Origin: Pavona decussata
Lineage: Eukaryota
DNA length: 63,878 nucleotides
Assembly: GCA_977016875.1 (NCBI GenBank)
Contig: CDRNST010000008.1
Span: forward strand, 3,720,123 to 3,784,000
Reading direction: 5' to 3'
The position numbers and the translations under genes are program-made. The notes below the pieces were generated by a model. It did not search any database. It saw only the letters and a list, made by a program, of their open reading frames with translations, and was not told the origin of the DNA. Below, piece after piece: positions 17,432 to 63,047 of this stretch (positions are counted from its first letter, which is position 1; every line of letters starts with the position of its first letter).

Positions 17432-19724
17432 ATGGCGTCGAGACGTGGCACTTTCCCGTCTTTTCATCATGTTAATCCAAGTTGTGGACCAAACAGCTCG
17501 TTTTCAATCAGACGAATATTAGATCTCCCAGAAGAGAGTAAAGGAGAATGTGCCTCATCTTCAAGTAACAGTTCACCCATCGAGAGTTACCCTCGTTCTC
17601 TCCCCCTTGTTCCTCGAGTGTTTCGTCCCATGGTACACAATTATCGGGAAAATGTACCACACACTGCACTCATGAATTGGCAAGACTTCGGTGTCATGTC
17701 TTGTGCTCATCGCTGGGGCTATAGTACTCTTTCTTTTGGAGATCAGCGATTTCCATTAGGTAAGTGAGTCACAGACACAGTAGACACATCTCAATAGGTT
17801 GCTGTTCTAATGTCCATGTTACGCCTTCGGGAAGACACGACAACTTTACCTAAATACCTATTCAGGTTTGCTGTCTTGTTTTGTTTTCTAGGGGCTAGAA
17901 TAAGCTGAGTCCGTATTACTACTCTAAAGTTCAGATGGATTTATGCCGAATTGTTAAAAGGAAAAGTAGGATTTAAAACTAATTCCATCTGAGTCAGAGA
18001 CAGATGCCCCAGAGGGAGATTCACTGATTTGCCGTCCATAACTTCACAACGTTTTGCTTCTTTGTAGATCACAAAATACTGGGATGATTAATTTCGTCCC
18101 TAATCAACAATCATTTAGTCATTGCTTATGGCAAGGGAATGGAATATTGTCTGGAGGGAGTAATTTTTGCAAAGGTTTGCGCTTCTTCACCAGAACAAAT
18201 ATATACAACAGAAAAGCTCCCTGAGGTTATCTTTCATCAGAACCGTTTAACTACGTTGTGCATTCCTAACCTGTACACACGTTAAGACCCTCTTTTCAAG
18301 TAGAAATAGACTAAGCGAAGTCACCGGCAAACTTACAGGAACAGGAAAAGACTACCAACTGACTGACAAGAACACGAGGACAAACATTGTACGATTTTAT
18401 GCACATTGCTGGGGCACCGAACGAGATAATTTCAGCAAAACACTTAGCTTGCCGTGTTTCTAGATCGTTTATGGCCCTTTTAAAAGCTATTCGTGTTACC
18501 TAACACAGTTATCATGTCCTGTTCAAATTCCTAAGCTGAAAATTTAAATGACAGAAAATCATAGCAATCAGAATCTCATCTCCCGAATTTCCGATCTTCT
18601 AATGCCTTTCTAAATAATCCTAGTTGGCTCAATGCGACGACATTTTTACCCCTCCTAAAACAAAGTATCTTATTTTTTTTCTCATGTTAGGAAAGTTTGA
18701 GTAAACAGTTCTTCTAGCTGTTCTTCATCTGTATAGCTAAGGCGATTACTGCCTTCCAACAGATACGTTTGATTCGTTTGCTATCCCTCACACTAAGAGG
18801 ACCTAAACCAAAACCTACTCTTCTACATGGAAAGAATATTACGTGTACTACTGACCAGCTTGTTGGTAACTTGCTTTAGTCTACTCGCCATGAAAATTAA
18901 GTTGTAAATGAACTTCTGTTAGTTTCTTTGATTTCTTCACACATTTTAGCTGTGCTTGAATTCGTAATCTTAAGAGCTTGCTCGAAAATTATAATTTTTC
19001 GTTTACTCGCTAAGTATTGATTTCTGTCTGCTGAAGAACGAGAGGGGATTAGTCTAAGTAAAGGCCAAACTATTTTAGTATTTATTCTTTCAACAATCAG
19101 AGAACATTTGTTTGATATTCCTGTTTTCCAATTATTCCTCAAAAGACCCAAAAACAAACCAAACAAAAAGGACACACAACTTGTATTACTGCCTCTAGTT
19201 TCGTTTCGTTTCGTCTCGTCCTAACTTGCTGAAAATACATTAGAACTTTCCATTTACACACCAGTTGAGTAAAATATTATCTTTTTAATGCCTTTTTGAT
19301 TCTTTATGGCTTAGGGATCTTTCCAAAGAAGAGAAGGCGTCCTATGCGAAAGAAGAAACAGCGACCACTGTTTTCACCGCACCAAATTCAAACGATGGAG
19401 AAAGAATTCGCCAAACAGCGTTACGTAACGGAGGATAAGAGAGCTCAGCTTGCTTTAGAGGTAAACCTTACAGAAACTCAAGTCAAAACCTGGTTTCAAA
19501 ATCGACGAACAAAGTGGAAAAAGGAAACAATAGATGAAGCGAGTGCAGCCTCAAGGTGCTCCCAGAAAGAAATGGAACATGTCTTACTCGCAATGCAGAG
19601 CACAAACCGTTTTTGTCAAAACGTTTGTGTTGAGTCGCTTGTTAATCCGTTCAGAGTTTTTCCACAGCATTGTGCTGCACCGGTGTTTTCGACTATAGAC
19701 TTCAAAGGTTCTTTTCCTCCATAG
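17432..19724 (+). CDS. NKL-subclass (ANTP-class) homeobox protein with eh1 motif, paralogue 1 (about 245 aa; exons 17432-17759, 19315-19724)
   Basis: Exon 1 has eh1 (SSFSIRRILD). Donor TTAG|GTAAGT and acceptor TTAG|GG give a phase-1 in-frame join to a full homeodomain KKKQRPLFS...QVKTWFQNRRTKWKKE. Confidence 0.92.
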
Positions 19725-22700
19725 AGTGTTCTTAAACGCAAAGCACGATTGTTGTACGTCGTGTTTAGTGGTAGATATGTATATGTAACATACCAAGTTT
19801 AGCTTATATTAGAAGTTCGTTTACGTTTCCATTCCTCAGTAGATTATCTTAGAATATATGTACGAGTAGAGAATTAAGCTTGTTTCTGGTTTTGTATGTT
19901 ATTATCGATTCTCATGCTTCATATTTATCACCGAGCTTGGTACAATTTCATGCACAAGTCCTGAGAAATTAATTCAGTGTATCCAATTCGTTTCGCATTC
20001 CTTGATACAGTCATGAATTCAGTAAATCCATTTTTCCGATTCAAATCCGCGCGCGAGTGGAATGGCCAAGTAGATAACCTTTTTTGTTTCAAACAAGCTC
20101 TTTTTTAATTTAATTAAAATAATCGTCCTGTGAGGCTTTCAAATTCTTCCAATGCCTTACTATTACGGTACTAAAACATATATGACCAGAATTTATGTTG
20201 GAGAGAACGCTTTCGCTTTTCTAAAGTTTGAGCACTTTTAGTTTACTTTTGGCTGGTTGTAAAAATTGCAGATAGTAAATCCTCTCTCCTTCTTTCTGAC
20301 GTGTTTTAAATGTTGTAAATAAGGTTGTATTTTCACGGACGAAAACGGCTTTAAATTGAACGACAAGAAATCAAATCTGACTGAGGTTAACTCATGTCTG
20401 TCATTCTTATTCTTAAATCTCAGCGATTTACATCGAAAGATTTCAGCATGTTTCATGGAATTTAACAAGCAGTGCCCTTCAAGTGTGAAATACATTTTTC
20501 CGCTGTGAGTGTTAAATTCTGCTCTTTCGTCCAAATTGAAACATTTTCTGTTGACTCGGCCATTTCACTCGGACTCGGACCTGACTCGGATACTGATTTA
20601 ACTCGGTCAACCGATGAACTCGTTCTTATTTACCCATCAAAATATTTGTTTCTGCAGATTATTTGAACAAACCTTTTTCGCCTATTCAGTATAAATTATA
20701 CAATATACAATATATTGTTCCATATTTAATCGACCAGAATGTTTTATGACAGTGTAAATTTAATAAGCGGTCAGGAAAAGCTGATAAACGAGTATCAAGT
20801 GCTTCCACAGTTTACGAAATCCCGACATAAGTTCACCTTGAATACTGACTGTTTGTCTACAGTATATGGCCTTTCATTACGCAGTGCTCGTATAAAAAGC
20901 TGCTAAATTTAAGGAGCGTACATGTAAGGTGAAAATAAAACAATTTCCTATTTCCTAACATGTGGATTTCCTTCACGGTTTACGAAATGGTATTCTATTC
21001 TGATTGTTATCATATTTTTATTTATTTTTTACGACATCGTGATAGTGAATTTTTCGTTTAAAAAAATAATTTGGGGCAACATTTCCGGAAAGGGTGTTGA
21101 GCATTCTTGGAACAAAGCCAGTGATTCAAATGTGTTTTCAATGTCAGAAGTCTCCTGACCCTTTTTATTTCGACCAATATTGCATTCTTTATTATGAAAC
21201 GGTAAATTCTGAATTGCCATTTGATACAGCGTATCTGAAACACACGGCTTGATATCTAGTATGGAAAAAAAATATATATATATTAACTTGCTACAATCTT
21301 GAAAAGAGTATAAATTTCTGTTTACATGAGAACATAATGTGGTTGCCAAAATTATTCTGCCATCCAAACCGTTGCTGAGTGGATCAGTTTTGCAGGCGTA
21401 TGGAACCCAATGGACTACTTATCAGACTATTAACTAGTCAAACTGGCAAATCAAAGGATCGGCTTTAAGCCCTATCTTTCATATCTTCATTGACCAAGTG
21501 TTTTCCCTAAACAATCCACCTTGGAGCATATGACCGTAGTTAATGAGTTATTATTTCACAAAGGAGCCAGATTTTCACCATGCGAGGTCTTCTAATGTTA
21601 GGAATCTTGATGGAAGTGGGTTGTATCACTAATTTTACACTTTCGGCCGTGAATTTGTGCACCCATCGAAATTAGCACTCAATTACTCTGTATAAACAAC
21701 TTGATCACACATGTCATGCATCTGTAATCAACCTATTTTATCTGGCTTTCACTGATCCATGAAAGTCATCTCTAATTCAGTGGAAGGTAAGAGCGAGTCT
21801 CAGTTTTCTTCAACAACCACTCATAGACATTTTGTTGGAACAACATCAATACAAAGTCCTAAACCCTCCTACCTCTACTGTTAATTTTGTAAAAACAAAA
21901 TTTATGAAGATATTCAGTTTTTTCTACCGAGCAGATGCAGTACTGATAACAGTGGTAACATAGGCTCTCCCCATTACTCCATAAGGATCAATTGAGAGCT
22001 CTCAATCCATAAGAGATGATCCCGACAGAGTGCATCTGTGGAACAAAGAGCCACAGTAATTTTTATGGCCAGATAAAGACCGACTACAATGGTCAGAGTT
22101 CAATCCAGCATACCAATGGAGTTTGGGATGAGGGTGTTCCAAAAACTTGTATAGAAAATAAGAATCAAGAGGAAGGGTTTCCTGCGCGACGCTGAAGTCC
22201 CAAGTGCTTGTGAAATTCACTAATCAGTTCACAATTAGTCACACAGATAAGGACAAGTGGCTACAAAATCAAACTCAAAATCAAAGTAGATTATAAACCA
22301 ATTTTATGCGGATGACGTACCTTGCAGATCATATCACACAGGGGGAAAAATACAGTTATTACACAACTGATGACTAACACGATAACTCACAGCTTACGAA
22401 ATTACCTCCCGTTTTTCGGTCACGTGTTTAAAAATTAAAGGTATCCTGCAACAATATAACAATGTCCACACCAAAAGTATGAAACAAACTATTTCCAACA
22501 ACAGAACAAACTAACGCTTCCAAGCTGGATAATGGTTGACAAGCATTTCGCTGACGACAGTTTCTCTTCTAGTCATTGTTTAGTCCATTGAAAGAGCGTA
22601 ACCTATTTAGTCAACGGATACTGTGGGATTTAGGATCGCGTGATCATTCATGAAGCACAACCAAGTCTGTCATTAAAATACAGAGCTATCTGCCTTTGAA

Positions 22701-23659
22701 AAACAAAACGTTTATATCCTCTTTCTGTAGGCTGCAATTTATTGGTGTCAACTGAAAAGGCCACTAGCACTTTTTCACAAAACATCTGCGTGTTAAATTT
22801 GGTTGCAAATATTGACAGTTGACAAGCTTCATTTATTATCTCGTGTCATGTGCGTGATTTCAGCCGGAACTGTGCCACCATGCATTCAAAAGGCGATGAA
22901 AGTGGTGACAGATAACCTGACTTTCAAGCATTTTCATTTGTGATTAATCCGTTGACCAATTATTATAACGTACTTTTTGTTTACAAAGGGAGGTTGAATA
23001 GACAATTCAATTTACAGACCAAAAAAGACTTCAAAAAGACATTAGTCTTTCCCAAGCGATCAGAACTGTTGGTAAGCTTTTTTGGGAGAAAGGTCAAAAG
23101 GAAACAAACTGATTGGTCAAGTGGGAAATCTTAGGAGACACACAAATAGACTAATGTTTGCTGAGAACACTTTCATCTGGGCCGACCCTGTAGACGGGGC
23201 ATCGCTATTTTGACGTTCACCTTCAAATGCAATTACTCTAAATAAATAGAGCGAGTTTGTTTGACCCGTGAATATGCCGTTTCCGTGAGTGTTCGCGATA
23301 TGTTTCATCCGTCCACTAATTCAAAAGAGTAAAGTCAAGGCCGGCCTTAACTTCGTTTTCCGCTAAAGAAAACCTGTAACAAACGTTTTCTTTTGACCAC
23401 ACAGTAGTGACCGAGAGATGATAATCGATGTCTGGAACATTCTTGGCCCATAGATCGAAATAACTAAAACAACGACGTGTTTGTCTTCCTTGTGTTAACA
23501 AATCAAATTGCCTTTCTTTTTAAGTTTGTTTTTTGTTTTGTTAGCGCTCAAAAGAAAATCGCTCATAAAATTGTTTTCCAGTTTCTAGAACAAACTAGTG
23601 CAAAAAAAGCAGGTGGATTTCTGTGTGTACTTATGGAAGTTCTATTAATTAAATGAGAG

Positions 23660-23875
23660 ACTATCGCAGCTGGTAAAAGAAAACGTGAAGAAATTCATAC
23701 TTGAACGGTGTTCGAACTCCATGACCCCTGCGATACCGGCGCAGCAGTCTACCAATTGAGCTGCCATTCCGGTGAGTTCGTAGAATAGCCGGCAGAACTA
23801 GAAATGATGGAGAGACGGAAGTGGAATATATGAAATGTCGTATATTTGACCTGCGAATAAAATCAGGAGAAACCA
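23660..23875 (-). mobile_element. Degenerate tRNA-derived SINE-like repeat
   Basis: Minus strand reads AGCTCAATTGGTAGA...CCGGTATCGC...GGAGTTCGAACACCG (A-box and B-box like) without an intact cloverleaf. Confidence 0.55.
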
Positions 23876-23940
23876 TTAATATAAATCTTGTTTAAAAAGC
23901 ATGTGAGGTAGGGTTACCACTTTTTGTACCTTGAATCTTA

Positions 23941-24106
23941 CGGAGGGTTTCCATGATACTGGTACGGCTTTTTTAAACCGCTTAGCAGTTGTTCCCATTG
24001 TCCTTTTCTGCCTATTTACCTGGTTTCGAGTCCTCCGATACTTGTACCGGATCGAGATTCTTATTTCGGTGCGGAAACGCATTCCGGTGTCATGTAAACG
24101 CTCCCC
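23941..24106. mobile_element. Small TIR element (MITE)
   Basis: Left GGAGGGTTTCCATGATACTGG versus right-end reverse complement GGAGCGTTTACATGACACCGG. Confidence 0.55.
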
Positions 24107-25644
24107 GTGTGTTCGTTTCATGATCAAAAGAGAATGTACACCATCCTGTAAACGCTGTATGAGGTCCTCCTCACTCGATCGCAATGAAAGTGTCATATAA
24201 CCATCCAATTATTATTATTTTTTTTTTAACAAACAAAAGAGGCTCTCCTCAAGATTCAGTTTACTTGTACATTTTTACGTTCCCTTTCAAGAGTCAAGGA
24301 AGCTCTCCCAAATTAAAATGGCTTTATGATTAACTATTGCCAGAAACTCAAACTCTATTGATTTTATTGTGTTTTTGAAGTATTGCGTGTTCTTGAAATT
24401 GTACCTATGGTAAAGCTCTTGACAACATGATCGGTTATAGGGGATACCTCGATTTGACACGTGTTACCTGTATCTTCTTTGTTACATACAGATTGTAGTC
24501 AACAAAAAGGGAACAAAATAGTACATATTTTGTTTGATCAATTGTACGATAACGTTGTCTTTTCATATAGTTAAACAGATCTTTCTTTTGGCTAACACAC
24601 AACCCAACCCCTCTCCCCCAATAACTCGACTCCCATGAAATAATGCTTCGAAGTACGTTGCGTTTGGTCAAATCATACTAAAATTCTACCAGCTGTAAAT
24701 ACGAGTTTGCCGATGTCGCCGTAAAAGCGTTAGAAAAAAGACCTTTCTCATAATAAAATGCTTTTGATAGTTTGTATATCCAGACTATTTTCGCAAGCTT
24801 GGCGTTAATGAAGATTGATGATGGTGGAGACAACCAGTTTGTACTTGAAATGACAGCCAAGAGCCGGTGATATTCTCTGCAGCTTCTAATTTCTCCAAAG
24901 TGCGCGGCGGAAAATAAGAATACAAATTTGATCTTTTGGTTTCCGTCCAACCTTAACCGACCGACCCTCCACTTGATGAATTTGTAGGTGTGTCCGGATG
25001 CAAAAAGTAGTTGCCGAAGATCGAAGGCCGTTGGGGCAAACATTGCATCCTTACAATCCCTTTGAAAGTTTCTCTTCGACTTTGCCTAAAGGTACTGAAA
25101 AATACCAAAGTTTTACATTAATAGTTTCCAATTTCTCCCGAACATTTGTGAATTATTGCATCTGATCATGTGAGCACATGGCGGCCACTCATCAAATGAA
25201 AACAGGCAGCTACTTCAGTTGCAACCAGTCAGAGCGTCCGATATGTTTTCTTTTAAAAATCATTCTGAAAATGTTATTGGTAGTGGCAAGGTGACAGATG
25301 TGTCCTGTTATTCCCCTAGTGTCAGTTGCTCTGTCAATATACTGCAATTAACTGATCAATGAAAATATAAGCACTTCTCGCTGGCATTAAAAAAATCCTC
25401 AGTCGACCGGCTAGGATCCAGTAAAGATTGGTTGGCATCAACACATGTCTTTTTAAAGTTAAAAAAAATGCCGATATCTCTGAATGTCATAGCTAGGGGT
25501 AATGTCCATCACCTTAAATCACCTTTATTGTTCATTTTCTAAACAGAAACCAACTTTTTCTTAACTAAATTTGTTGTAGTACTCTATTGTGTATTTAGTA
25601 TTGCTTTCCGAGATTTTCAGAGAAGCTGTTAACACTGAGCAGCT

Positions 25645-25945
25645 AAGTGACTAGTTAGACTGACTGACTGACTGACGGACTGACTGACTGACTAACTCAC
25701 TTACTGACTCATTGCTTGACTGNNNNNNNNNNNNNNNNNNNNNNNNNNNNNNNNNNNNNNNNNNNNNNNNNNNNNNNNNNNNNNNNNNNNNNNNNNNNNN
25801 NNNNNNNNNNNNNNNNNNNNNNNNNNNNNNNNNNNNNNNNNNNNNNNNNNNNNNNNNNNNNNNNNNNNNNNNNNNNNNAGTGAGTGAGTGAATGACCGAC
25901 CAACCTACCGACCAATCGAATGACAGAAGGACTAACTGACTGGCT
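25645..25945. repeat. (TGAC)n-type degenerate microsatellite flanking assembly gap 25723-25878
   Basis: TGACTGACTGAC... on both sides of an N run. Confidence 0.85.
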
Positions 25946-26305
25946 GGGTCAAGTAATAGGTATATATATATATATATTTATATATTCATTTACTGTATGA
26001 AGAAAGCTTTGAAAGAACACAATGAATTGCTTATGGCTGTCAATTTCCCTTGTAAGCGGAGAAGCTTGTTAAGCCAGGTTTGTGCAAGTCTGTTCTCAAT
26101 TGTTCTAATTCATTTAAATGAAGAATTTGCTTTGTCATGCACTTCTCAGCTTCCTATTTCTTCTTGGATTCCGTTCAGGCGCTCTCCCCGACTTTCTCAT
26201 TTCAGTCTTTCAGTCTTTAATTTTCCGTTTGGCCTTCTGGACTTCATGCTCACCTTAATTTTCACCAGACAATACCTGTCTAGCAAAGACTGTTATTTCA
26301 CATTA

Positions 26306-26563
26306 TAGAGAGGTTTTCAATTGAGTATCGAAAGTAATTTCGCGTTTGGTTTTCTTTACTTCGCCTTGTGATTTGGTAGCAAAACTCGTGTCATTTTCTC
26401 AGTGAATCACAGCGAAACCAAAAACCAATGGCGACTTGCTCGCTCGCGTTTTTCTCCGCTTAACGCCATTTTTTTGTACTTGCTTCCAGTTCTGATCGGT
26501 TTGTTGTGATGAATAAGTATGCAACGATTGGCCAGGGACGACGCTCAGTTGAAAACCGCTTTA
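26306..26563. mobile_element. MITE with TAGAG(C)GGTTTTCAATTGAG TIRs
   Basis: Left TAGAGAGGTTTTCAATTGAGTATCG; right CGACGCTCAGTTGAAAACCGCTTTA. Confidence 0.7.
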
Positions 26564-32568: not shown

Positions 32569-34631
32569 ATGGCGTCGAGATGTCGCACATTTTCGTCTTT
32601 TCATCCTGTTAATCTTCCAAGTTGTGGACCAAACAGCTCGTTTTCGATAAGACGACTATTAGATCTCCCAGAAGAGAGTGAAGAAGAACGTTCCCCATCT
32701 TCAGTTAAAAGTTCACCAACCGAAAATTGCTCTCGCGCTCTCCCGCTTGTTCCTCGTGTAGTTCGTCCCATTCTACATAATCGTAGTGATAGCGGTCCAG
32801 GTACTGGTCTCATGAATTGGCAAGATTTCGGTCTCATGCCTTATACTCACCATTGGGCCTGTGGAAGGTTTCCTTTTAGGGACCAGAGATTTCCATTAGG
32901 TAAGTCTATTGAACGCATCTCAAAAAGGTTGTTGTTTGTTCATATTCGGCAAAAACAAAGCGACGAGAACTACAAGCAATTCAGCTTTACCTTTCCGTTT
33001 TGTGTTCTTATCGCTAAAATAAACTGATTATTATTAGTTGGGTGTTCGGATTGATTTATGAACTGTTTAAGGGAAAAAATCAGACTTAGGAGTTAGGACC
33101 ATTTGAAACAGAAACCTATACCAAAGATTGTTGTGCATAAGTTGACAACGTTTGCATTGCGTCGTTCATGGCGCGAAGCAGCGGAGATTTCAATTTATTT
33201 CCAGACCACCAACGTTTTAGTTACTTCTTGGAGCAAGACATTGAAAATTGAAAGTAAGAGAACGAACTGGCGTCGCGAAGGAAACATTTGTTTTGACAAA
33301 AGGGTTTCAATATCCTTTGCTGAGACAAATTTACACAGTAGAGAATGGAATAGCTGAAGTGAACTTCGATTAGTTATAAACAAGTACAGAGTTGCCGTAT
33401 TTTACTGCAGTCCATTAAAACACAGCTGCTAATTTTCGTGCTTAATCTTTATGTCTAATACCATAAACTGACTTTTCAAGACACCGAAAACTCTCTAAAT
33501 TTTAGAGCAGATTCATTGCGCGTACAAAATGGCGTATGAAAATTTTCCATTTCATGCATTCGAGATGAAGTTTCTTTGTCCAAATAAATTGCTTTGTCAA
33601 TGAGCCACTAACTGCAAAGGAGAAGATAGCAATTCAATTTGGAAGATATAAGTGATACCTTCAGAGGAAACTTTACTTCAGGGTACGATAAAATATGTTG
33701 CTGAGCTTCCCAATGCTAACTTACCTTGGTCCCATCTCTGAAGGATTGTAAACCGGCCGTGAAAATAACTGCTTTGGCTAGTTTTATTGCACATCTGTTT
33801 CCCTTTTTTCATTGCCCCATTTTGCAGTTTTTAAAATTCTTTAATTAACTACCCAACCCTCTCCGATGGAAAGATAGAAGGTGATTCGAAAAAAAATATA
33901 ATTTAACTGAATGAACTCTATTTGTCATTTCTTCCTACGAAAGATAAACACGAGGGTAGGCTAATTTTAAGGTAAAGCTGTTATGCCCTATTTCTTGTTT
34001 ATTCTTTTAGCAAAGGGAAGATGTTTATTTCAGATTTAAATTTTTAGATTTTTGTTAACAAAAGCCGTGACTGCCATAAAAAAAAACCTCGACACCACTT
34101 GTTTTCCGTGCCCCTTGTTTGGTATCGCTTGAACTTGTAAAAATCATACTAAGAACTTTTCATTCACACTCCAGTTTTGGTAAAATTGTCTTGTTCTATT
34201 AACATCTTCTGTAATTAGGAATTTTCTCAAAGAAGAAAAGGCGCCCTATGCGAAAGAAGAAACAGCGACCACTGTTTTCGCCGCATCAAATCCAAACCAT
34301 GGAGAAGGAATTCGCCAAACAGCGGTACGTAACGGAGGACAAGAGAGCTGAGCTTGCTTTAGAGGTAAACCTTACAGAAACTCAAGTCAAAACCTGGTTT
34401 CAAAATCGGCGAACAAAGTGGAAAAAGGAAACAAAAGATGAAGCGAGCGCAACCTCAAGCCGCTACAAGGAGGAAATGGAACATGTCTTACTCGCAATGC
34501 AGAGCACGAACCCTTTTTGTCAGAACATTTGTGTTGAGTCGCTTATTAATCCGTTCAGAGTTTGGCCACAGCATTGTGCTGCATTGCCGTTGTTTCCGAC
34601 CATCGATTTTAAAGATTCTTTTGTTCCATAG
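32569..34631 (+). CDS. NKL-subclass homeobox protein with eh1 motif, paralogue 2 (about 247 aa; exons 32569-32899, 34219-34631)
   Basis: eh1 SSFSIRRLLD; donor TTAG|GTAAGT, acceptor TTAG|GA, phase 1. Homeodomain is identical to copy 1 except Q33E. Confidence 0.92.
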
Positions 34632-43555: not shown

Positions 43556-43622
<67 letters not shown>

Positions 43623-47750: not shown

Positions 47751-48788
<1,038 letters not shown>

Positions 48789-50079: not shown

Positions 50080-50119
50080 AAGTGTGAAAAGTTGTTGTGA
50101 GCGGCGCCTTCGGGTCTGC
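50080..50119 (+). promoter_or_regulatory. Candidate BMP-response element plus T-box-like site, 5' of Gbx
   Basis: AAGTGTGAAAA then GGCGCC-TTCGG-GTCTG (50103-50118). Confidence 0.6.
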
Positions 50120-51622: not shown

Positions 51623-52200
51623 AGATTTAAGAGATTCCCCCTTTTAGAGATTCCCTATTTTAGAGATTCCCCCTTTTAGAGATTCCCTATTTTAGAGATT
51701 CCCTATTTTAGAGATTCCCTATTTTAGAGATTCCCCCTTTTAGAGATTCCCTATTTTAGAGATTCCCCCTTTTAGAGATTCCCTATTTTAGAGATTCCCC
51801 CTTTTAGAGATTCCCTATTTTAGAGATTCCCCCTTTTAGAGATTCCCCCTTTTAGAGATTCCCTATTTTAGAGATTCCCCCTTTTAGAGATTCCCTATTT
51901 TAGAGATTCCCCCTTTTAGAGATTCCCTATTCTAGAGATTCCCCCTTTTAGAGATTCCCTATTTTAGAGATTCCCCCTTTTAGAGATTCCCTATTTTAGA
52001 GATTCCCTATTTTAGAGATTCCTCCTTTTAGATATTCCCTATTTTAGAGATTCCCCCTTTTAGAGATTCCCTATTTTAGAGATTCCCCCTTTTAGAGATT
52101 CCCTATTTTAGAGATTCCCCCTTTAAGAGATTCCCTATTTTAGAGATTCCCCCTTTTAGAGATTCCCCCTTTTAGAGATTCCCTATTTTAGAGATTCCCC
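51619..52200. repeat. 16-bp minisatellite array (TAGAGATTCCCCCTTT / TAGAGATTCCCTATTT), right TIR arm
   Basis: Directly visible; inverse of the array at about 50224-50440. Confidence 0.95.
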
Positions 52201-52771
52201 GTTCCCCGTTCCCCATTCCTCCATTCCCCGTTCCCTATTTTAGAGATAGCCGATTAACTGGCTACACGCTGTTCCTTTGGGTAATTACGAGAATTGATGA
52301 CATGATTCACTAAAGTATACAACGCAGAGCCCGGACACCATTGATTTGATAATCCCTTAAGCTGTTCCAGAACAAACAGGCATGTTTTGTTACATAACTG
52401 CGCAGGACAAATCGCTCGCGAATCATCTCATTTTTTAAAAAGGTTTTTACTTCCTCGCCAAAGCTCTGAACGAAATACTGGAAAATTGGTAGTTTTATCT
52501 TTCGTCATTGCTGTTCCAGGATTCGGACAACAATAAACAGGAACGGTGTTCTACGATATATCGATAAAATCGTATTTATCTTAACGATTGTACCCGATCG
52601 ATAAGGGAACGATTACAACCTAGGAAACAGTCCGTATCCTCTGCGTTGTTCCACGCAAAACGTCGTTACGAGTTGACAATAACAAATGAGGTCATCATGA
52701 CGGCAGCTTTTGCGATAAGTTCACCAGACCAGGAAAACGGCGATCAAAAACTACCCTGAATGGCATTTTCT

Positions 52772-52857
52772 TAGCCTGCGTTGCAGCCGGACTTGTCACT
52801 CAAGACTCGATATGGTCCTAAATCAGGGATTGTATAGACTGTCTGCGACGCAGGCTA
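52772..52857. mobile_element. 86-bp MITE with 8-bp TSD
   Basis: TIRs TAGCCTGCGTTGCAG / CTGCGACGCAGGCTA; TSD CATTTTCT on both sides. Confidence 0.85.
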
Positions 52858-54078
52858 CATTTTCTATGCGGCGCCCCATTAAGACTCTGTTATTCAGGAT
52901 TGGTGTAGAAGGTCATTCGTTCGTTCTGAAAACTGAAAAAAAAAAAAAACAGCGGCAGATTTCAACAATGGCTTTCTCTTGTACAATGGGTCTACAATAG
53001 ATAAACCGTGTTTTCCAATTTGTTTCTTTGTTGTATACTAAAATGTTCGAAGTGACTCATACGTGCGCTATGATTGGTGGAATTGAGTTCATTATCTCCG
53101 ACCATAATTCACGTTTCGTAACTAGTTTCTTAGGACTATTGCATCAAAGACGAAAAAAAAAATGTGTAAATTGGCAATTAGAACTATGTTTTTTGAAATT
53201 TGGGAATAATAGTGTCGCCAAGACATCAACAGCCCGCCAGTTTTAATATAACAAAAGTGAAAGTACTTGCCCCTCGTGCATTGTTGAGTTATATAAACAC
53301 TTGGGAAATTTTAAGAACACTTGAGAACTGAAGTGCTCAGAGAAGCACTCGCCCCCAGTCCGGCCTTCTCCAAGCACTTCTCTTTTGTGGTTAAAAATTC
53401 CCGCGTGCTGATATGACGCAACAATGCACCCGCTTTTTATCCAAAGTTATCAAGCTCGGAAAAACTTCAAAGGAAAACTATAAATTGACTACTGAGTACA
53501 CTAACAAGGAGGAATTAACTTCAGTTCTTAAATGCAATCCATATCTTCTTAATAATCAAGGCCTGGACTTTTTTTTAATCATCCGCTCTTCCACAAAAAG
53601 TGTGTACTGGGTTAGCAGCCATCAATGTACAGGCTGACCTCGTTAAATAAAGTTATTGTTTGTTTGTTTTAGCAGTTATGGTCTGCTGCTGATTGTGGTC
53701 TGTGACGGTTATGAAGATCCTATAAAAAGAAGAAAAGCCGGGCCTCAAGAGACAAGGAACTCAGTTCACAACTGCCACAACTGTATTGGAGAGTCTCCAA
53801 TACAGTTGTGGCAGCCCAGGCGGGGTGATTTATCGAATGCCATGTGACATAAGGATTTCTTTTTTTTTTTTTTTTTTTTTTTTTTGCCTTGCTATTTTTT
53901 GTGGTTGCAGTATATCCATCAGGCTATGTCGAACTGTCAAATTTCCAAAATTTCGACACCATCAAAATGACAAGCGAACATGGATGGACGTCCCATTTGA
54001 AACTTTTGATATTCGTGGTTCCGTTTATACTCCAAAAAACCTTTCCAGACCTCTCCGCGCCTGGGAATCCTCCATTTG

Positions 54079-54109
<31 letters not shown>

Positions 54110-54182
54110 CACAAACATCAGACTGGGTGGCGGAATAAGCCTATCGGTTTCAAATTACGCGATAGGCTGAATTTGTAAATAA

Positions 54183-54221
<39 letters not shown>

Positions 54222-54222
54222 G
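54183..54222. repeat. (TTG)n microsatellite
   Basis: Directly visible. Confidence 0.95.
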
Positions 54223-55284
54223 ATATAGTAATTGAATCTTTCCTGTCCTTGCGAAAAATATTTATTAAAATAGGATGAAATTAACACAGTACACACAAAC
54301 ATTAAACACCTTGAAGGCTTTCCTTTGGATCGCATACCGAAACCCAAACCTATCCTACCACAGTTAAGATCCAAAGTGTAATGAAAGAAGAATACAGTGT
54401 AGTGCTATTGTGGAGTATAATTTGTTTAAATTAGGACCTCTAGTTTCAAAGGCTGAAATGCCCCTAAGCCGGGCTGAAATGTGTTCCGGCAGAGTCGGCT
54501 AAAATGGTCTTCAGATAGGGCTCTTTTGCCTCAAATTACATGATAACCAAAATGGCTCCTAGAGGGGTTTATTGTGACCCAAGGTCGCAAAAGATGAATT
54601 GGCACTTTGAGGCTGAAACAAATCTCTTGAATTTACGGTGCAGAAAGTAATGACAAACGTTCATGTTTGTCTGCAAGGTCAACTGTTTTGAAGAAACGGT
54701 TGTTAACGGTTGAAGAATGCGGCTGAGGTTGGCAGTGGCAACACTATCAGACCCTATCAGCCAAGGAGAATAAAGGAACGAACTGCGGATGGTAAAGTAA
54801 TAATCCATACCAACTTTAAAGGAGAAAGACAAGACCACAATTTGCATAATTAACTGTGCCATCTAAGGCACTTGGTCACTTGCTCCATCCAGTTTTGTTT
54901 CGCTTAAAGAAAAAAGAGGGACATAAGAGGTACGGCTTGTTGCAGGGCAAACATGCCCAGAGTGTTGTGGATGTGTTGGTGACCCTTATGGTCCATATCG
55001 ATCAGAAATGTTGAGGTATGCACATCTAGTTTTTAGGCAACATCACCGAGATAACTAACGTGTTTACGCATGTTTAATGAGGGGATCCCCAAACTATTTC
55101 AGTTACTCAGACCAATTTTGCTGGGGTTAGATCTACGCAATCGTTGACATGTCACACTACAATGAAAATATGGAATCAGGCAGACATTCACTTTTTTGTC
55201 ACACTTACATGTAATAAAAACGATCACAAATTTCTCATATGAAAGAAGTGTGATGTTACGTTTTATGCCTGGCAAATAAATGAT

Positions 55285-55600
55285 AATTTACAAACACTAC
55301 CATCTTCAACATAATGACCAGATACCACAGCGTTTTTTAGAACTGTTTCACGTTCTTGCGAAATGCACCAGCAAATTTGATTGCCTCATTCATGAGATGC
55401 TATTCATACGCAAACTGAAACCAGAACTGAACGTGCAAACTGATTCAATTCGCGCTAAAGTATTTGTTTAACCATCTATTAATATGTTAATTTTCAGGTC
55501 TAGCCTATTTAAATATCCGCGTTCACAAACTGATTTTTTCTCTTGATAATGGAGTCAAGATGACTCCGAAACGTCGAGCCTTAAATCTCTCTGTAATTTT
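55285..55600 (+). mobile_element. 3' end of Penelope-like element with hammerhead-like motif
   Basis: FHVLAKCTSKFDCLIHEMLFIRKLKPELNVQTDSIRAKVFV* (GIY-YIG C-terminus) followed by CTTGATAAT-GGAGTCA-AGA-TGACTCC-GAAACGTCG. Confidence 0.78.
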
Positions 55601-55705
55601 TGCAAATAAATGATAGACGTATTTTTCAGTCATTAACAAAAACGTTCTCGGAAAAAGGAAGTCCAAGTTCTCCCAACAGGAGTTGAACCCATGTTCTTTC
55701 GGTTA

Positions 55706-56130
55706 GACTCAGGATTTGTATAAAAACGTCGAAAATTGGAGTTCAGGCTGAGCTGGAACTCGATGTTCTTAATTTTTTGTCGTTTGGGCCTGGAAAATTC
55801 TTAAGTGTGAGTTAAACATAAACGATTGACTGTAACCTCATCAGAAAAGATAGTCAATTTTTTGGCCTCGTGATGCTGTGGAGAAACACCTGCCCCAGTT
55901 TCCGTTATGTTTTCTATAGTATGTATTTATGTTACAACTTTTTTGTGTATGAGCAACAGACTCTCTAAAATATGTTCCAGTTTCCACAACAGTCACAAAT
56001 TACTCAACTTCATAAATAAAATATATAAAGAATACTTTCTTACGTCAGTCTCAGTCTTGGCAGGGTTCATAGTGTGTTCTTCCCAAGCTCTCGTTCTTAT
56101 TTAAAAAGGTTCTTATAAAAAAAATGAGTG
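55706..56130. mobile_element. TA-TSD MITE nested in SINE
   Basis: TA|GACTC...TATAAAAAC and GTTCTTATAAAAAAAATGAGTG|TA termini. Confidence 0.6.
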
Positions 56131-56214
56131 TACTTGTTCGGATGGTCTACCAGTGAGTTATAGGAGACTCATGGAGCTTGATCATTAGACATTCATGTGA
56201 CAAACATCCAATAA

Positions 56215-56559
56215 GGGAAGTGGTCAAAACTATTACACTCAAACAGGACCCACCAAACCAGAAAATAGCTGGTGATGTCTGCCTACACGCCCCTTCCTCA
56301 ACCCCAAAAGATGATGTCTTTATTGCATAGCCACCCCTCTATCCAGCAGTAAATGATGACAATGAGATACAAAACTCATTAATTTCTTGTTTATCTAGCA
56401 ATGCTGGCTCTTGCGAGCTTAATGTTTCTGTGTCAACTCAAATTTTAAAGCCAATAAAATTTTGTCGGTAATGTTCATGACTGATAGGTGGTGTGTTTGA
56501 TAACCCCCCTACCCCAGGGGGTGGGTCCTGTTCAAACAAACCCATTATGACCAGTTACC
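56215..56559. mobile_element. Harbinger-like MITE with TAA TSD
   Basis: TAA|GGGAAGTGGTCA...AACAGGACCCACC and GGTGGGTCCTGTT...TGACCAGTTACC|TAA. Confidence 0.65.
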
Positions 56560-56790
56560 TAACTGTTGTGATTTATGCTAAGGACAAACCGTTGTCGGGG
56601 CTACCCGAGCCTTTCACTCTCGACGGGTATGTTGTGTTTATTTCCAGTATGATAACTTGAGTGCAAATGTTTTGAAATTGTAAGAAAGGGTTACTTATCC
56701 TTTGAGTTCTTCTGGGCTAAATAGCACGCCAATGACATACCTCACACTTCTAACTTAGTCCTAAACAACCAATCATTGTCACACATTTAC

Positions 56791-57303
56791 GGGCGCGTTT
56801 TTTATTCACAATTCTGGAATGAGAATGGCCAGAATGTAAAATGCGCGCGTTTTTCCTATTCCGCATTCCTATTCTGGAATGGACAGAATGCCATTCCATC
56901 CATTCTGCTCCCAGGGGCAGAATGAACAGAATGTTGCGAATGAAAAGCCAAGATGGCGGACAGCGAGATGAGCGCTGCCGATTCAAATACGTCTCTACCG
57001 GAGAAAAAATCGGGTTATACTTTTGGACACAATGAAACATTGCTTCTAATTTCACTGTACCAAAAGTACGAGGTATTTTTCAGTGATGTTTCGTACAAGA
57101 AAAGGGCAATTTGGCGAATGATTGCCGACGACATGAAGAAAAATGGCTACTCTCCGTCGGCAATAACCTGCGAGAACAGGTGGAAATGTCTTACATCTTT
57201 CGTTCTGGCGGCGGGCGTTTTTTTATGCAGAAAATCCGAGTTATTCCTAGCATTCCGTACCAACTATTCTTATTCCAGAATTGTGGATAAAAAAAACGCG
57301 CTC
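56791..57303 (+). mobile_element. PIF/Harbinger deletion derivative retaining a Myb/SANT-like (trihelix) ORF start
   Basis: About 35-bp TIRs (GGGCGCGTTTTTTATTCACAATTCTGGAAT / ATTCCAGAATTGTGGATAAAAAAAACGCGCTC). The ORF from 56953 encodes F..NETLLLISLY...AIWRMIADDMKKNGYS.SAITCENRWKCL. Confidence 0.8.
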
Positions 57304-59159
57304 TTAGATTTTAAACCTTTATTTGTAACGAGTTTCTCACGTTTTTGTTTCTGTTCAGCCCCCAAGGAAGGTTTCTGTGGCAAACCGAAATATCAGACTA
57401 CCTGTCATAACATTTTTCAGTTTTTCTTGCCATTTTGTTTATTTTTCGCTACCTCCGTAGTTTGGATAAGTCTGCCGCCAATATTTTGCATTTCAAAAAA
57501 CACAACATCGATCAATCGTCTCTCAGCTTCTCACGCCAGCCGAGTAATAGAGACGAATGGCAAGCACATTGCTTGGTATTTCACGTCATTTGCGAAAAAC
57601 CTAGGAGGGAGCGGACATAATGGCTATTGACACCTCCCCCAGACCCAATTCCCCTGACTATCCAATAAACTTTTGTCAAAGAGAGAAGACATAAAAATTC
57701 TATCAGGCAAGCAAATATTTTATAAATATTTTCGAGATTTTAAAGGAAAATCCTTGAAACTCCTTTTGATCTGAAAGCGATCCAACGAAGTCTGCTGCAA
57801 TCCAAGATAGTACTCCTTCGGAACCTCAAAGATCCCCCTGAGAGGCTTCGGAGTCGTAGCCGTCAGACAGTATCATCATCCATCATCAGTGTCCTAGTAG
57901 TGACGACCAAAACAACAACAACCGTTTCACGCAGGGTTCATGCCACAGACAATAAAAGGCAAAAGATAAATCTAGATAATATTTTGATTATGTGAAAATA
58001 TTAAATTTTAACCGATTTTATACAGGATATTCAGTGTGCTGTCCAGAGGATTGGGAGTAGCGGTCAAATAGGCGGTCCAATAGGTAATACTTCAGGGACC
58101 TCCAGCTTTGTCAGGGGGACTTGGGGCAGGTTGGACTCTTCAAGGGGCGACCATTTTGAATTAGATAAAGCCCGATAATCTAGCTACAAATTGCTTCTGT
58201 TTGTCCAAGTAGTCCTTGCAAATTTAAAGTTCACGACTAAAGTCATTGTTTTGTTACAAATTGTCAATAACAACTATCCTATTCTGATCAAAAAAAGCCC
58301 AAAGAGCGAAAATTTAAAGACTACGCGTAATAGTGTTTTAATAGAAGCGAAACAACGGTAAGATCCTCTTGACAGTTGAAACGTTCTTGTTAAGAAGACA
58401 GTGGAAGTATACCTTCAAACCGGACTAATCACCATGGTCGATTTATGTCCTGACGTGAAACAAAATTGTACCATTTGTCCTCGGATAGTTAACAAATTTA
58501 AAATTACCGTTTCGTATCCTTCTAAATTATACTGTTTACTTGGAAACAACTGAAAATAAACTCACCTAGAAAACGTAAGCTCTGAGTTAAATGCACTAAT
58601 AAGAACGAAAGAACGCTGTACCTCCGCTTCGAATCCGTCTATCAAGTTGATATTTGCTTTCTTCACTTTCCGTGAACCACTGATGGCGGCAGACACGATG
58701 CGACCTCGGGCCCCACAGAATTAGATGTTTGATCAAATTTGACCGTCCCCTTTCAGCCACGGGGCTAAATTCCCCAGAATATCACCTAGGGAATATCGGG
58801 ATATTTTGTATTTTAGTTGGGGCATATTGCGTCACGGCGGACGCATTTAGTCGTTGCATCAGTTGGAACAAACAAGGACGTAAACGGGTGCTGGTTAGGT
58901 TAGAACTCTCAAGTCAACATCCTTTACAGGCATTTATGATGACTTAGTCAAATAATACTTTAAATACCTTCATAATAAAGTTGTACATGCCCCACTTATA
59001 TTTGTTATCTCAAGTTCTCGCTGTTTCACATGAAAAATGGCAAGTTAGAGTTTCCGCTAAGAAAATTCATTTGTTAAGTTAAGGGAACAATTCAAATCAC
59101 GTGACCTGGACATTTAGGGTTAGTTTTGGGTTAGAGTCGGGGTTTGGGCGTCGACTAGT

Positions 59160-59355
59160 AGGCCTTTCCCGATTGCGCTGAGCACCTTTTGAGCACTTTT
59201 TTTTAGTTTGGAGCACTATTTTGCATTTTGAGCACCCTTAAGCACTTTTTCGCACTTTGGGCAACATTTGAGCAATAATTCATATTTCGAGCAAAATTTG
59301 GAGCAACATATGTCTTCTAAAACATTTTAAAGCAAAAACTGTGTCGCTCGCAACG
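59160..59355. repeat. GAGCA(C/A) subterminal-repeat array, probable DNA-transposon end
   Basis: About 10 spaced TTTGAGCA(C/A) motifs after AGGCCTTTCCCGATTGCGC; partner end not found. Confidence 0.4.
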
Positions 59356-59529
59356 AGAATCGTGTTCCAGGTCATAAATTTGAATAAGTAATGATGTTGT
59401 CAAGAATAAAAGACTGTTGTCATGGGAAGACATGTGGACTTATCCTTACTGAGTGTGAGAACAGAAGTTTCTGATTGGCCGATGTATCATGTGTGTGTCA
59501 TCTCAAATTTCTCAATCATCCGATGTCTA

Positions 59530-59790
59530 GGCTTTGCATCCGCTTGAATCGAGACCGTCTACCTGCGCCACTGTTACTATTAAAGATGTTGTAGCTGGTC
59601 TTTTGTGACAACTTTGAGAAGTTCAAGGAGATCGGTGGTGGCTTCATTGAAAGTGGTTTCATTGAAAGCCTTTTCAGCGACAATCAGAATGCTTTCCTCT
59701 GGTAGCGAAAAACGTTTCTCGCACCGCTAGACAACCCTAGGCACACCCCCCCTTTTTAAGTCATTTAGCCTGAAGAAACTTATGCTAGAG
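59530..59790 (-). mobile_element. Penelope-like RT fragment
   Basis: Minus strand EESILIVAEKAFNE..FNE...DLLELLKVVTKDQL...QVDG, the same region as in the other PLE remnants. Confidence 0.6.
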
Positions 59791-60432
59791 ACACGCCTAT
59801 TGGATGCCCAAGTTTGACTTTGTGGCTAAAGGTGTGACTGATAACGAAAGGGTGGATTTGTTTTGGTTTTGTTTTGATTTGAATGTGAAACAACAGGTCA
59901 GGTTTCCGCCTGAGACGAAGGAACTTATTTTGTGTAGAAAAAAGGGGGTAATGGTATCTACAGGAAATACATTATGCAGTTGTATTGTTGGCTTTGTTAC
60001 AATAAAATGCACGGAAGCAATCTGTAGAATCGTGGACTAAAGACACGTTCAAAAGTCAAACGCCCGGCAACTGTGTTTAAGACATTGATTATAATGAAAT
60101 AAGAAAAGACAAACAAACAACAGAACAAAACTCTAATGAGGAAGAAGAAAGTAGTGGCCATTTGGAAACCTCAAATATTTGGCCCAGAGCCATAAGACAA
60201 CGATGCATAATTATTGAGATCTGACAAAGAGTTTTATTCTTTACCTTAGAAATAAAATAATAGCTCATGTGAAAGCTGTGATGGCTGCAGTGAAGTTAAA
60301 GACAATGTGTGCTAATATAATTTGCCGAGCCCTGACGCAATTGGATCCTTTCGAAGTGAACCCATTTAGGATCTCTGCGTGGAAGCACTTGACACTTGTT
60401 TATCAGCTTTTCCTAACCACAAAATTCGCACC

Positions 60433-60508
60433 GTGACAAAGCTCACAAAATAAAGCGGCAAACTTCGTCTCCTAGTGACAAAGCTCACAAAATAAAGCGG
60501 CAAACTTC
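60433..60508. repeat. 34-bp direct repeat (period 42)
   Basis: GTGACAAAGCTCACAAAATAAAGCGGCAAACTTC at 60433 and 60475. Confidence 0.9.
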
Positions 60509-61089
60509 CTCTGCTAAATACATAAATGATTTAACTGATAGTTGCGGAAAAGCTGTGAGAACCGCTTAATTTTATTATATGTTTCGTGAGCTTGATCAAC
60601 AGGTATTGATGTAAAGGAAAAAAACAATGTCGGTCGAAAAACGGCCTTTGTTGTCTGCAACTAACCATACCGCAAACTTGAAAAAAATGCGGCTTGTCGT
60701 GTTTGTTGAAAATAAATTGTGCTGGGATTACCAAAACTTGAATGAGTAAATTCAGTGTAGGAAGACGTACTTTGAAAGGTAAATAAATGTTGGCTATACC
60801 TGGCAAACTTGCGGGGGGGGAAAACATTGGATTGAACGCACTAGATGAATTTCAGAATTGGCTATTAATGGTATCAACAATTAAAAACTAAATATGCAGT
60901 AAGGTAACAGATAACAGCATTCAAAACCATATAGAAGAGATATCATCTTCTTTTACACACACTCTGAGGATACACACGTTCTGAGCGTCATATACTCTGA
61001 ACATAAGGACCACAAAAGTTAACATACAGCAATTGCGTTTTCTCTTCAAGATCAATCTGTCGAACGAAAGAACCTTTCAAGTCAATAGT

Positions 61090-63047
61090 CTAAAACACCG
61101 GATGCAGTGCGGCAATGTCGAGGCAAACCTCTGAACTCTGATAAAAAGGGTTTATGCTCTGCATTGCTTGTAAAGCATGTTCCATTTCTTTATGGGAGTA
61201 CCTTGAGGCTGCACTCACTTCATCTTTTGTTTCCTTTTTCCATTTTGTTCGCCGATTTTGAAACCAGGTTTTGACTTGAGTTTCTGTAAGGTTTACCTCT
61301 AAAGCAAGCTCAGCTCTCTTGTCCTCCGTTACGTACCGATGTTTGGCAAATTCGTTCTCCATGGTTTGAATTTGATGCGGTGAAAACAGTGGACGCAGCT
61401 TTTTCTTTCGCATAGGACGCCTTTTCTTCTTTGGAAAGATTCCTAAGAGAAGGAGCAGTGAAGTTATAATTATACGAAGAGTAAGAAAATTTTACTACAA
61501 CTGGAGTGTGAACGAAAAGTTGTTATATATTGTTGCAAGTTCAAGGGATACCAAACTAGGAGCCCTGATACAAGTGGTGTTGCCCTTTCCTTATAGTGTT
61601 AGCGAATCAAAATTGGCAGTTAACGAAGGAAAATTGAAATCTCATGATACATACCTTACAATTTTTCAAAAAGGATTAACAAGAAGCGACCTACAATAAT
61701 TTCAGGTTAATATTACTTACTCCTATGCTCTACTTCGGAGAACTGAAGAGCTCCGAGTTCAGCCATTAAATTTACAATTTATTAAAATCTTCTCCGAGCG
61801 TTCGAAGATGATCGGGCTTGTTAAAGAAGAACCCAACTCTGAAATGTGGTAAATAAGAAAAAGAAAAGTGTGTAACAAGACAATCTTAACTCTATTTTGA
61901 TAGCCTTTCAACAACAAACTGAATCTTCGTGGATCAGATCAAGGCAACTTGCTATATGCAGGAATCTTGGTACCATATTTTATTTTCATCTGAACAGTAG
62001 CGTGAGTGATTATTACATAACTACTTTAACCCTTTGGCTTAGTGGCTTCTTAAAATCTACGCCGGTTTAACAAAGCACAAGCGGCAGTACATCATGATTT
62101 TTGCACACATGCTGTTATCTGCTCTAAGGTTCCAAGAGTTACTGATTGTCTTTATAAACAGTAACTCCGGGCTTTAAGAAATGTTGATTTATCATACAAA
62201 ATAGACGGCTGTGTTCCCTCAAAGACAGTCAAAAACGATAATCCAGTTCCTAGAAGTTGAAGTCAACTATAGCAATTCCATTCTCAATTGTCGGAAGAGT
62301 GATTTGTTCCGGTGAACGACGACGAAATCTTAGCAGAAAACAAATATAGTAACTTCGCAACAACATCTCGTTCTCTTGCTTACAATTTATGAAGAAGGCA
62401 TATTAAGCTTGCACACTCCCGACAAAATGAAGCAGGAAATGAAATCAGAACCTTTTTCCGTTTTTGGATCGCCATCAGTGAGGGGAAACGAAGCATTTTA
62501 TGGAAATGACCTGCTGAAAATTGGACTGAAATCCTATTTTTAGCTTTTAAGAGTTTAACAAATAAATCTCAACATCAAACTAGTTAAAATCAATTTATTC
62601 TGGCTCAAAGAAATAGATAAAACTGGATAGTTATGGAGGCTTGTTGCTGTGTTTTCGCCGAATGCATAACCTGAACATAACAAACAACCTTCTGCAATAT
62701 GTTTAACTTATGTTACCTAATGGATGTCCCTGGTCCCTGAAAGGAAATAATCCACAGCTCCGATGATGAGTATAACGCATAGGACCAAAATCTTGCCAAT
62801 TTATGAGTCCAATGTGTGGTACATTTTGAGCGTAATTGTGTATAATGGGACGAAACACTCGAGGAACAATCGGAAAAGAGCGAGGACAACTCTCGGCTGG
62901 TGAACTGTTACCTGTAGCTGGGCTACAAACTTCTGCATTCTTATCAGAGAGATCTAATATTCTCCTTATCGAAAACGAGCTGTGTGGTCCGCACCTTGGA
63001 GGATTGATATGATGAAACGGCGAACAAGTGCCACCTCTCGTCGCCAT
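61090..63047 (-). CDS. NKL-subclass homeobox protein with eh1 motif, paralogue 3 (about 227 aa; exons 63047-62717, 61442-61090), altered C-terminus
   Basis: eh1 SSFSIRRILD; donor TTAG|GTAAC, acceptor TTAG|GA, phase 1; intact homeodomain. An optional in-frame upstream ATG at 63071 adds 8 aa. Confidence 0.88.

Follow-up and report, generated by a model that had tools for sequence, protein, structure and literature searches.

The DNA analyzed here is a 63,878-nucleotide stretch of the coral Pavona decussata (C8:3720123-3784000, where C8 denotes contig CDRNST010000008.1), hereafter called the window. It carries three related two-exon homeobox genes, which we call copies A, B, and C, together with a single Gbx gene. 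It is quite probable that the window covers part of an extensive tandem array of anthozoan HLX-like genes (the NKL-type genes HLXd-g), in which a single Gbx is embedded and which grew from an HLXe-like neighbor. The coral array is a lineage-specific tandem homeobox expansion seeded by the already known hlxe-gbx pair.

Extent and integrity of the array

The whole genome (602 Mb) was searched with exon 1 and exon 2 of copy A, each exon being used as a query in its own right. On C8 these searches return 17 exon-1 matches and 18 homeodomain matches. Homeodomains elsewhere in the genome are all at most 50% identical, and no family member was found outside the C8 locus in the 602 Mb searched. The matches on C8 include 12 exon-1/exon-2 pairs (copies A to L) spanning 3,737,554-3,946,728. 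Read from left to right, the order is X1 (+), X2 (+), X3 (-), a PRDM14-like gene, A (+), B (+), and Gbx (-), followed to the right of Gbx by copies C to H (-), a 77-kb homeobox-free stretch, copies I to L (-), and Y (+). The blocks of young copies on both sides of Gbx are transcribed toward it, and the array is flanked by older paralogues that carry the family homeodomain signature, three of them (X1, X2, and X3) to its left and one (Y) to its right. About 17 family loci and the single Gbx thus fit within 276 kb of this contig. The sequence-only reading of the window had described a triplicated gene forming a mini-cluster. Since the search of the coral's own genome gives 12 pairs and four older paralogues, the count of three is an effect of the window edges, and both terms have to be abandoned.

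Ten of the 12 array copies are intact. They encode proteins of ∼230-250 amino acids with an N-terminal eh1 motif, a basic arm, a homeodomain with glutamine at position 50 (Q50), and a conserved C-terminal tail; the eh1 exon is present in all copies in the window, in D to L, and in X2 and Y, and gene models from Orbicella and Oculina have it as well. The remaining two copies, I and J, are pseudogenes. In copy I (L016, C8:3911186-3913104), exon 1 is frameshifted and helix 3 has been lost in frame, and this defective sequence is also seen in public assemblies of the coral (P0046, P0047), which shows that the lesion is fixed or common and not an assembly error. In copy J, homeodomain position 25 is a TAG codon. 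One more exon 2, the thirteenth (L020), has decayed and contains many stops, and the + strand also carries five stray exon-1 fragments.

Gene models of copies A, B, and C and of Gbx

Scanning the window in all six frames reveals four homeodomains, at 19.5 kb (+), 34.4 kb (+), 47.9 kb (-), and 61.2 kb (-), all of which are strong Pfam Homeodomain matches. The homeobox genes are therefore ordered A (+), B (+), Gbx (-), C (-), and A, B, and C each consist of two exons separated by a phase-1 intron; the scan and the splice sites together confirm the arrangement of three paralogues around Gbx that had been described from the window. Exon 1 of copy A (17432-17759, +) runs from the initiator Met to a phase-1 donor and contains the eh1 motif FSIRRIL at 17501-17521 (+). 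Its second exon (19315-19724, +) encodes the homeodomain (19350-19529, Pfam 8.9e-22) and the conserved C-terminal tail and ends at a stop, for a predicted protein of 245 amino acids. Copy B, with exons at 32569-32899 and 34219-34631 (both +), has the eh1 motif FSIRRLL at 32641-32661 and a homeodomain at 34254-34433 (Pfam 6e-22), and its model is 247 amino acids long. On the opposite strand, copy C has exon 1 at 63047-62717 (-), with FSIRRIL at 62975-62955, and exon 2 at 61442-61090 (-), with the homeodomain at 61407-61228 (Pfam 6.5e-22). Its model is 227 amino acids long with a shorter and divergent C-terminal tail, a form of tail that recurs in copy D beyond the window.

The exon borders of the three copies are alike. 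Exon 1 ends in ...CCATTAG|GTAAG (GTAAC in C), and exon 2 begins after a pyrimidine tract with TTAG|GG or TTAG|GA. In A, B, and C the exon joint thus falls between the first and second bases of a Gly codon, which makes the intron phase 1. Besides eh1, the first exons (17432-17759 in copy A and its homologues) retain LPLVP(R/K)(V/A)V(R)P..HN, NWQDFG, and PF(R/K)(D/N)Q.F. A motif akin to the first of these, P(L/F)VP(K/R)AV(R/F)P, also occurs in distant subfamilies (P0090, P0091).

The Gbx gene is transcribed from the - strand, with exon 1 at 48788-48536 (Met at 48788, an eh1-like FSIESII at 48770-48750, and a phase-1 donor) and exon 2 at 48145-47751 (homeodomain at 48047-47868, Pfam 4.9e-25, followed by a stop). 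It also has a phase-1 intron, and the exon coordinates give a model of ∼215 amino acids. Every named non-cnidarian best match of this gene is GBX or unplugged, and its homeodomain falls in a clade with Saccoglossus Gbx and Tribolium unplugged (support 97/88). The claim that all four homeobox proteins carry an eh1 motif holds, with FSIRRIL(D) or FSIRRLL(D) in A, B, and C and FSIESII in Gbx. The repressor role that was drawn from this motif is a fair reading of the sequence. On the basis of their eh1 motifs and Q50 homeodomains, the array proteins most likely repress through Groucho/TLE, and what is known of these two elements predicts binding to TAAT-type sites.

Splicing of copy A

Contigs from four public runs were aligned to 17300-19900. 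In the contigs of two runs labeled as the same organism, position 17759 is joined directly to 19315, with 17760-19314 skipped and GT..AG at the ends of the skipped segment. This is exactly the predicted intron of copy A, and it sets the last base of exon 1 and the first base of exon 2 in the model above. In the two libraries that are certain to be RNA, both metatranscriptomic and from corals, both exons are covered and the intron has zero depth. Full-length proteins with eh1 and a homeodomain in RefSeq Orbicella and in Logan contigs match the architecture of the gene.

Ages of the copies and selection

Among copies A, B, and C the number of synonymous substitutions per site (dS) in exon 1 is 0.39-0.44. 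The three can be aligned only over the exons and about 150 bp, at 72-84% nucleotide identity, and their introns cannot be aligned. High exon-1 dS and alignability limited to exons and ∼150 bp identify A, B, and C as old paralogues, neither alleles nor haplotigs, in agreement with the view taken in the sequence-only reading that diverged introns speak against collapsed alleles. A different picture is seen for F, G, and H (L013, L014, and L015; C8:3807379-3834077), which are 96-99% identical over exons, introns, and flanks, with indels. Their units measure about 9-13 kb and their intron lengths differ. By these measures F, G, and H appear to be a very recent triplication. The old copies share only exons, with no common flanks or terminal repeats.

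The ratio of nonsynonymous to synonymous change (dN/dS) varies along the protein. It is 0.06-0.4 in the homeodomain, mostly 0.3-0.6 in the C-terminal tail, and 0.4-1.0 in exon 1, where dS reaches 0.7 among the ten intact copies. The homeodomains are under purifying selection. Within exon 1, eh1 is invariant over 11 copies while the remainder is 52-76% identical, and the short motifs LPLVPRVVRP and NWQDFG are retained despite this divergence. Nucleotide divergence in the homeodomain is flat, at 4-10% between all pairs regardless of age, whereas exon 1 differs by 10-31%. Homogenization or synonymous constraint may be the cause. Gene conversion in the homeobox exon was examined with a Sawyer-type run test; the lowest p among 36 pairs was 0.017, and after correction this was not significant.

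Family identity

The family was described from the window as an orphan, a term that no longer applies, as its Nematostella members were named HLXd, HLXe, HLXf, and HLXg by Ryan et al. in 2006 (PMC1779571, supplementary file 1). A family profile was run on 1.8 billion proteins, and single domains were then re-scored, because the top profile matches were dominated by fused gene models with multiple homeodomains. Members score above 105 bits, intermediate relatives ∼88-96 bits, and everything else below ∼80 bits; in the comparison made for membership of the group, non-members reach 91 bits at most. Among the members is Nematostella XP_032228795, with the homeodomain of Nv_035 (HLXg). Nv_049 corresponds to HLXf, and the RPLF motif is also present in HLXe and HLXd; HLXg and HLXf are tandem neighbors in Nematostella. 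The family signature, found in the genes of the window, consists of R-P-L-F at homeodomain positions 5-8 and LTE(T/A)QV(K/R)TWFQNRRT(K/R)W. The sequence LTETQVKTWFQNRRTKW in helix 3 and the K/R-K-E that follows it are common to the coral family and Nematostella HLXd-g. A further subclade of the family with the signature KLRPLFSAHQIQTMEKEFAKCRYV..LTEMQV occurs in Oculina and other corals (P0090, P0084, P0112, P0116), with no counterpart from this coral's own genome among the matches.

Features typical of NKL genes are present throughout, including a 60-residue homeodomain, gap-free coverage of Pfam positions 1-57, Q50, and WFQNRR. Together with the trees and the GBX/unplugged matches of the window's Gbx, these features uphold the description of the locus as ANTP/NKL-type genes flanking a HOXL gene. 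The trees were built from 64-131 alignment columns and contain no bilaterian HLX sequence. In the first, the row Tlx_P0201 was disregarded since it holds the wrong stretch; the second was built without this row, without ERZ73755_c (which has no RPLF motif), and without a number of family and outgroup rows that were redundant or nearly duplicate. When set against 15 other ANTP families, the RPLF group, including Nematostella HLXd, HLXf, and HLXg and an HLXe-like protein, forms a clade with an ultrafast bootstrap (UFboot) of 96 and a Shimodaira-Hasegawa-like approximate likelihood ratio test (SH-aLRT) value of 96. The clade holds when coral HLXb- and HLXc-type genes are added (SH-aLRT 95). Within it, coral gene Y groups with Nematostella HLXd at 99-100 and is its one-to-one orthologue. 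An anemone clade unites HLXe, HLXf, and HLXg, whereas X1-X3 and the array fall into coral clades, and the array copies make up a coral-only subclade with conserved exon-1 and C-terminal motifs of its own.

Assignment to other named families was less fruitful. None of Engrailed, Noto, BarH, and Nedx (CG13424) groups with the clade in the tree. Position 49 is F in the family and Y in BarH, and Nedx-type genes are the top-scoring outsiders at 84-90 bits. The closest solved structure is BARHL2 (68 bits), and a feature search of the ESM Atlas returned generic homeodomain clusters only (rough, engrailed-like, not2-like), with no family call. With respect to HLX, the HLX/DBX signature (W/T)R(A/P)VF(S/T)..QR(K/R)GLEKRF is absent from the family in the tree alignment. 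The coral has separate HLXb- and HLXc-type (HLX-proper) genes on other contigs. Against the family profile their homeodomains reach 63-66 bits, and at least 20 other coral ANTP homeodomains rank higher (69-84 bits). The family, HLX, Barx, BarH, Bsx, and Lbx fall into one polytomous group (SH-aLRT 81) in this data set lacking bilaterian HLX. When the family and coral HLX-proper were held together, the log-likelihood (lnL) was 6.2 higher than that of the free quick search (approximately unbiased test, p 0.74). These data suggest that the genes are an anthozoan NKL clade, nominally "HLX-like", for which the trees neither establish nor reject a tie to true HLX.

Linkage to Gbx in other anthozoans

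An hlxe-gbx pair is known in Edwardsia elegans (PMC12053456). In ERZ25073755, the assembly of a more distant anthozoan (GC content 46%, Gbx homeodomain exon 84% identical), Gbx at ∼301 kb and three family genes with eh1 and homeodomain at ∼329-341 kb are located on the same contig. In Pocillopora, a homeodomain gene ends ∼10 kb from Gbx. The recurrence of the pairing in Edwardsia and ERZ25073755 argues that the neighborhood of Gbx and an HLXe-type gene is old. In Nematostella, only HLXc was found near Gbx, 600 kb away (Ryan 2007), and the hlxe-gbx pairing therefore seems to have been lost there.

Several other coral assemblies have many distinct family proteins on single contigs. On one contig of 1,946,225 bp, a related assembly encodes eight distinct family proteins, several of which are one-to-one partners of A, B, E, and L, and the family proteins of more distant corals form clades of their own. 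On this evidence, the large array is a scleractinian expansion with turnover; no description of such an array in corals was found in the literature searched. The proposal that the cluster is lineage-specific thus stands for the large size of the array, which is specific to corals, and fails for the linkage to Gbx, which is older, as Edwardsia and ERZ25073755 show. Its bearing on the ANTP mega-cluster is also slight. NKL-HOXL linkage has already been widely reported in cnidarians (PMC10598428, PMC10719294), so that the locus adds little and gives the mega-cluster idea no new weight.

Proposed origin and alternative explanations

In the account that we propose, an ancestral HLXe-like gene would already have adjoined Gbx in the hexacorallian ancestor, and the array would have grown from it by repeated local duplication, with copies being born and dying. 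The present locus would then preserve strata of this process, with A, B, and C as old copies, F, G, and H as a very recent triplet, and the pseudogenes I and J and the decayed copy as its losses. The proteins would act as sequence-specific transcriptional repressors that recruit Groucho/TLE. Several points weigh against this account. The 96-99% identity of F, G, and H, introns included, may reflect misassembly, though three copies are more than two haplotypes can provide. Exon-1 dN/dS nears 1 in some pairs, meaning that parts of the protein evolve almost freely, and some of the copies scored as intact may be heading for decay. For copy A, the RNA label of the two runs with the splice joint is a guess, and the evidence consists of assembled contigs; the two certain RNA libraries lack the joint, and their contigs are 2-4% off the window sequence and may therefore stem from a paralogue or a related coral. 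The 64-131 alignment columns appear to fit orthology of the array to HLXe, HLXf, and HLXg jointly as well as to HLXe specifically. Finally, Groucho binding, repression, and DNA specificity of the array proteins are predictions.

Were the copies artifacts of assembly, either haplotypes laid in tandem or collapsed repeats, the true locus would comprise one or a few genes. The near identity of F, G, and H over exons, introns, and flanks would fit such an origin, as would the public assemblies of the same coral, each of which carries the locus on two contigs in a haplotig-like manner. We nevertheless regard it as very unlikely, given the exon-1 dS and unalignable introns of A, B, and C, the C-terminal tails and lesions that differ among copies, the matching arrangement of A and B, in order as in spacing, on independent contigs, and the eight distinct proteins of the related assembly, several one-to-one with A, B, E, and L; in addition, two haplotypes cannot yield three near-identical copies. 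Still less credible, to the point of being negligible, is that the homeobox genes are cargo of a locally spread transposon. A MULE-like element and a Myb/SANT open reading frame (ORF) do lie between Gbx and copy C, but all copies are confined to one 276-kb locus with none elsewhere in 602 Mb, the old copies have only exons in common without flanks or terminal repeats, and orthologues stand beside Gbx in distant anthozoans. In a further alternative, which we consider unlikely, the region is prone to duplication and most of the array copies are by-products without a function, the ancestral job being done by only one or two of them or only by the older X/Y genes. The two pseudogenes, the decayed copy, the five stray exon-1 fragments, and exon-1 dN/dS values up to ∼1 are what such a process would leave behind, and the separate clades of other coral lineages fit rapid turnover. 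On the other hand, ten copies keep their frames, splice sites, eh1, a near-invariant homeodomain (dN/dS 0.06-0.4), and C-terminal tail despite exon-1 dS values up to 0.7, and a spliced product is seen for copy A.

The remaining alternatives concern identity and function. The genes could be true orthologues of bilaterian HLX/H2.0 instead of a separate anthozoan clade, which we hold to be doubtful. Ryan et al. 2006 placed HLXd-g under HLX, the constrained tree has the higher likelihood (AU p 0.74), and family and HLX-proper share a polytomy with Barx, BarH, Bsx, and Lbx. Yet support for the HLX grouping in that study was 0.07 by neighbor joining (NJ) and 0.24 by Bayesian analysis (PMC1779571), coral HLX-proper scores below at least 20 other coral ANTP homeodomains against the family profile, BARHL2 is the best match among solved structures, and the coral has its own HLXb- and HLXc-type genes on other contigs; the trees, as noted, were built without bilaterian HLX. 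A functional proposal of a different kind is that the array encodes fast-evolving Groucho-dependent repressors that share the Gbx regulatory domain and act with the Hox-Gbx code in endomesodermal segmentation. Enhancer sharing with Gbx, or a role in the Hox-Gbx segmentation program, is speculative, and the proposal as a whole is a long shot. If it were true, turnover of copy number among coral lineages would contribute to differences in mesentery or septum number or patterning. The tandem expansion of HLX-like genes from an HLXe-like neighbor of Gbx is the reading that we retain.

Neighboring genes and assembly gaps

The gene to the left of copy A (8217-10227, +) has PR-domain exon pieces at 8217-8543 and ∼9169-9396 and a C2H2 zinc-finger exon at 9535-10227, with PF21549 and 4-5 zf-C2H2 domains. 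Among solved structures the PR exon is closest to PRDM14 (8e-9), followed by PRDM12 at 5e-4. By its domains the gene is thus probably PRDM14-like, in line with the PRDM14 neighbor named in the sequence-only reading. Between Gbx and copy C, an ORF of 225 amino acids (56953-57630, +) encodes a Myb/SANT-like DNA-binding domain (PF13837, 2.8e-9) and may be transposon-derived.

An assembly gap at 25723-25878 lies inside an intergenic (GACT)n/(GAGT)n tetranucleotide microsatellite between copies A and B and is in no gene. No open frame longer than 33 codons abuts this gap on either side, its flanks have no sequence in common with each other, and the exon searches of the coral's own genome found no family exon between A and B. 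A and B recur on an independent public contig (ERZ25073805 ctg132939), where their exon-2 ORFs keep the order and the shared strand and stand 14.6 kb from each other, compared with 14.9 kb in the window. The spacing look-ups used 1 kb around each gene. The conserved order and spacing support the join across the gap and show that the gap is small. A second gap of 188 N (13790-13977) lies between the PRDM14-like gene and copy A, beyond the homeobox genes.

Elsewhere in the genome, contig C70 carries at least four Barx-like homeodomains at 1510020-1672228 (L032, L043, L044), two of them in a single open frame (L044). This group looks like another tandem NKL expansion.

Significance and comparison with known systems

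Gbx and HLXe-type genes have been neighbors since before the split of corals and sea anemones, and corals have inflated the HLX-like side of this neighborhood. The resulting array is among the larger homeobox arrays seen in a cnidarian. It offers a useful case of how developmental regulators are born and die, and it raises the question of whether the conserved Gbx embedded in it constrains, or shares regulation with, the turbulent array around it.

The closest relatives, Nematostella HLXd-g, resemble the coral family in the RPLF signature, in clade membership, and in the HLXf/HLXg tandem. In Nematostella, however, the group numbers four genes spread over two or more places, against about 17 loci at a single place in this coral. 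The Edwardsia hlxe-gbx pair, like the locus here, has an HLXe-type gene directly beside Gbx and likely represents the ancestral state; in Edwardsia there is a single pair, while here Gbx is flanked by 2 and 10 young copies as well as older paralogues. Bilaterian HLX/H2.0 and BarH share with the family an NKL-type homeodomain and eh1. The family differs from BarH in having F49 instead of Y49 and from HLX/DBX in lacking AVFS..QRKGLEKRF, and no supported sister relation was found.

Large tandem homeobox groups are known from other anthozoans as well. ANTP-group-c of Actinernus sp. is an anthozoan-specific ANTP group that owes 24 of its 28 genes to tandem duplication (Law et al. 2023, PMC10598428). 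Its arrays are spread over four chromosomes with no mention of a Gbx neighborhood, and we liken them to the coral array by description only. Among corals, tandem expansions of Nk2, Dmbx, and Msx have been noted in Acropora (Hislop 2005, as cited in PMC6214176). Other coral homeobox expansions likewise proceed by local tandem duplication, with a homeobox exon far more alike among copies than exon 1. Compared with these, the array on C8 has more copies, pseudogenes, a very recent triplet, and an embedded HOXL gene, Gbx.

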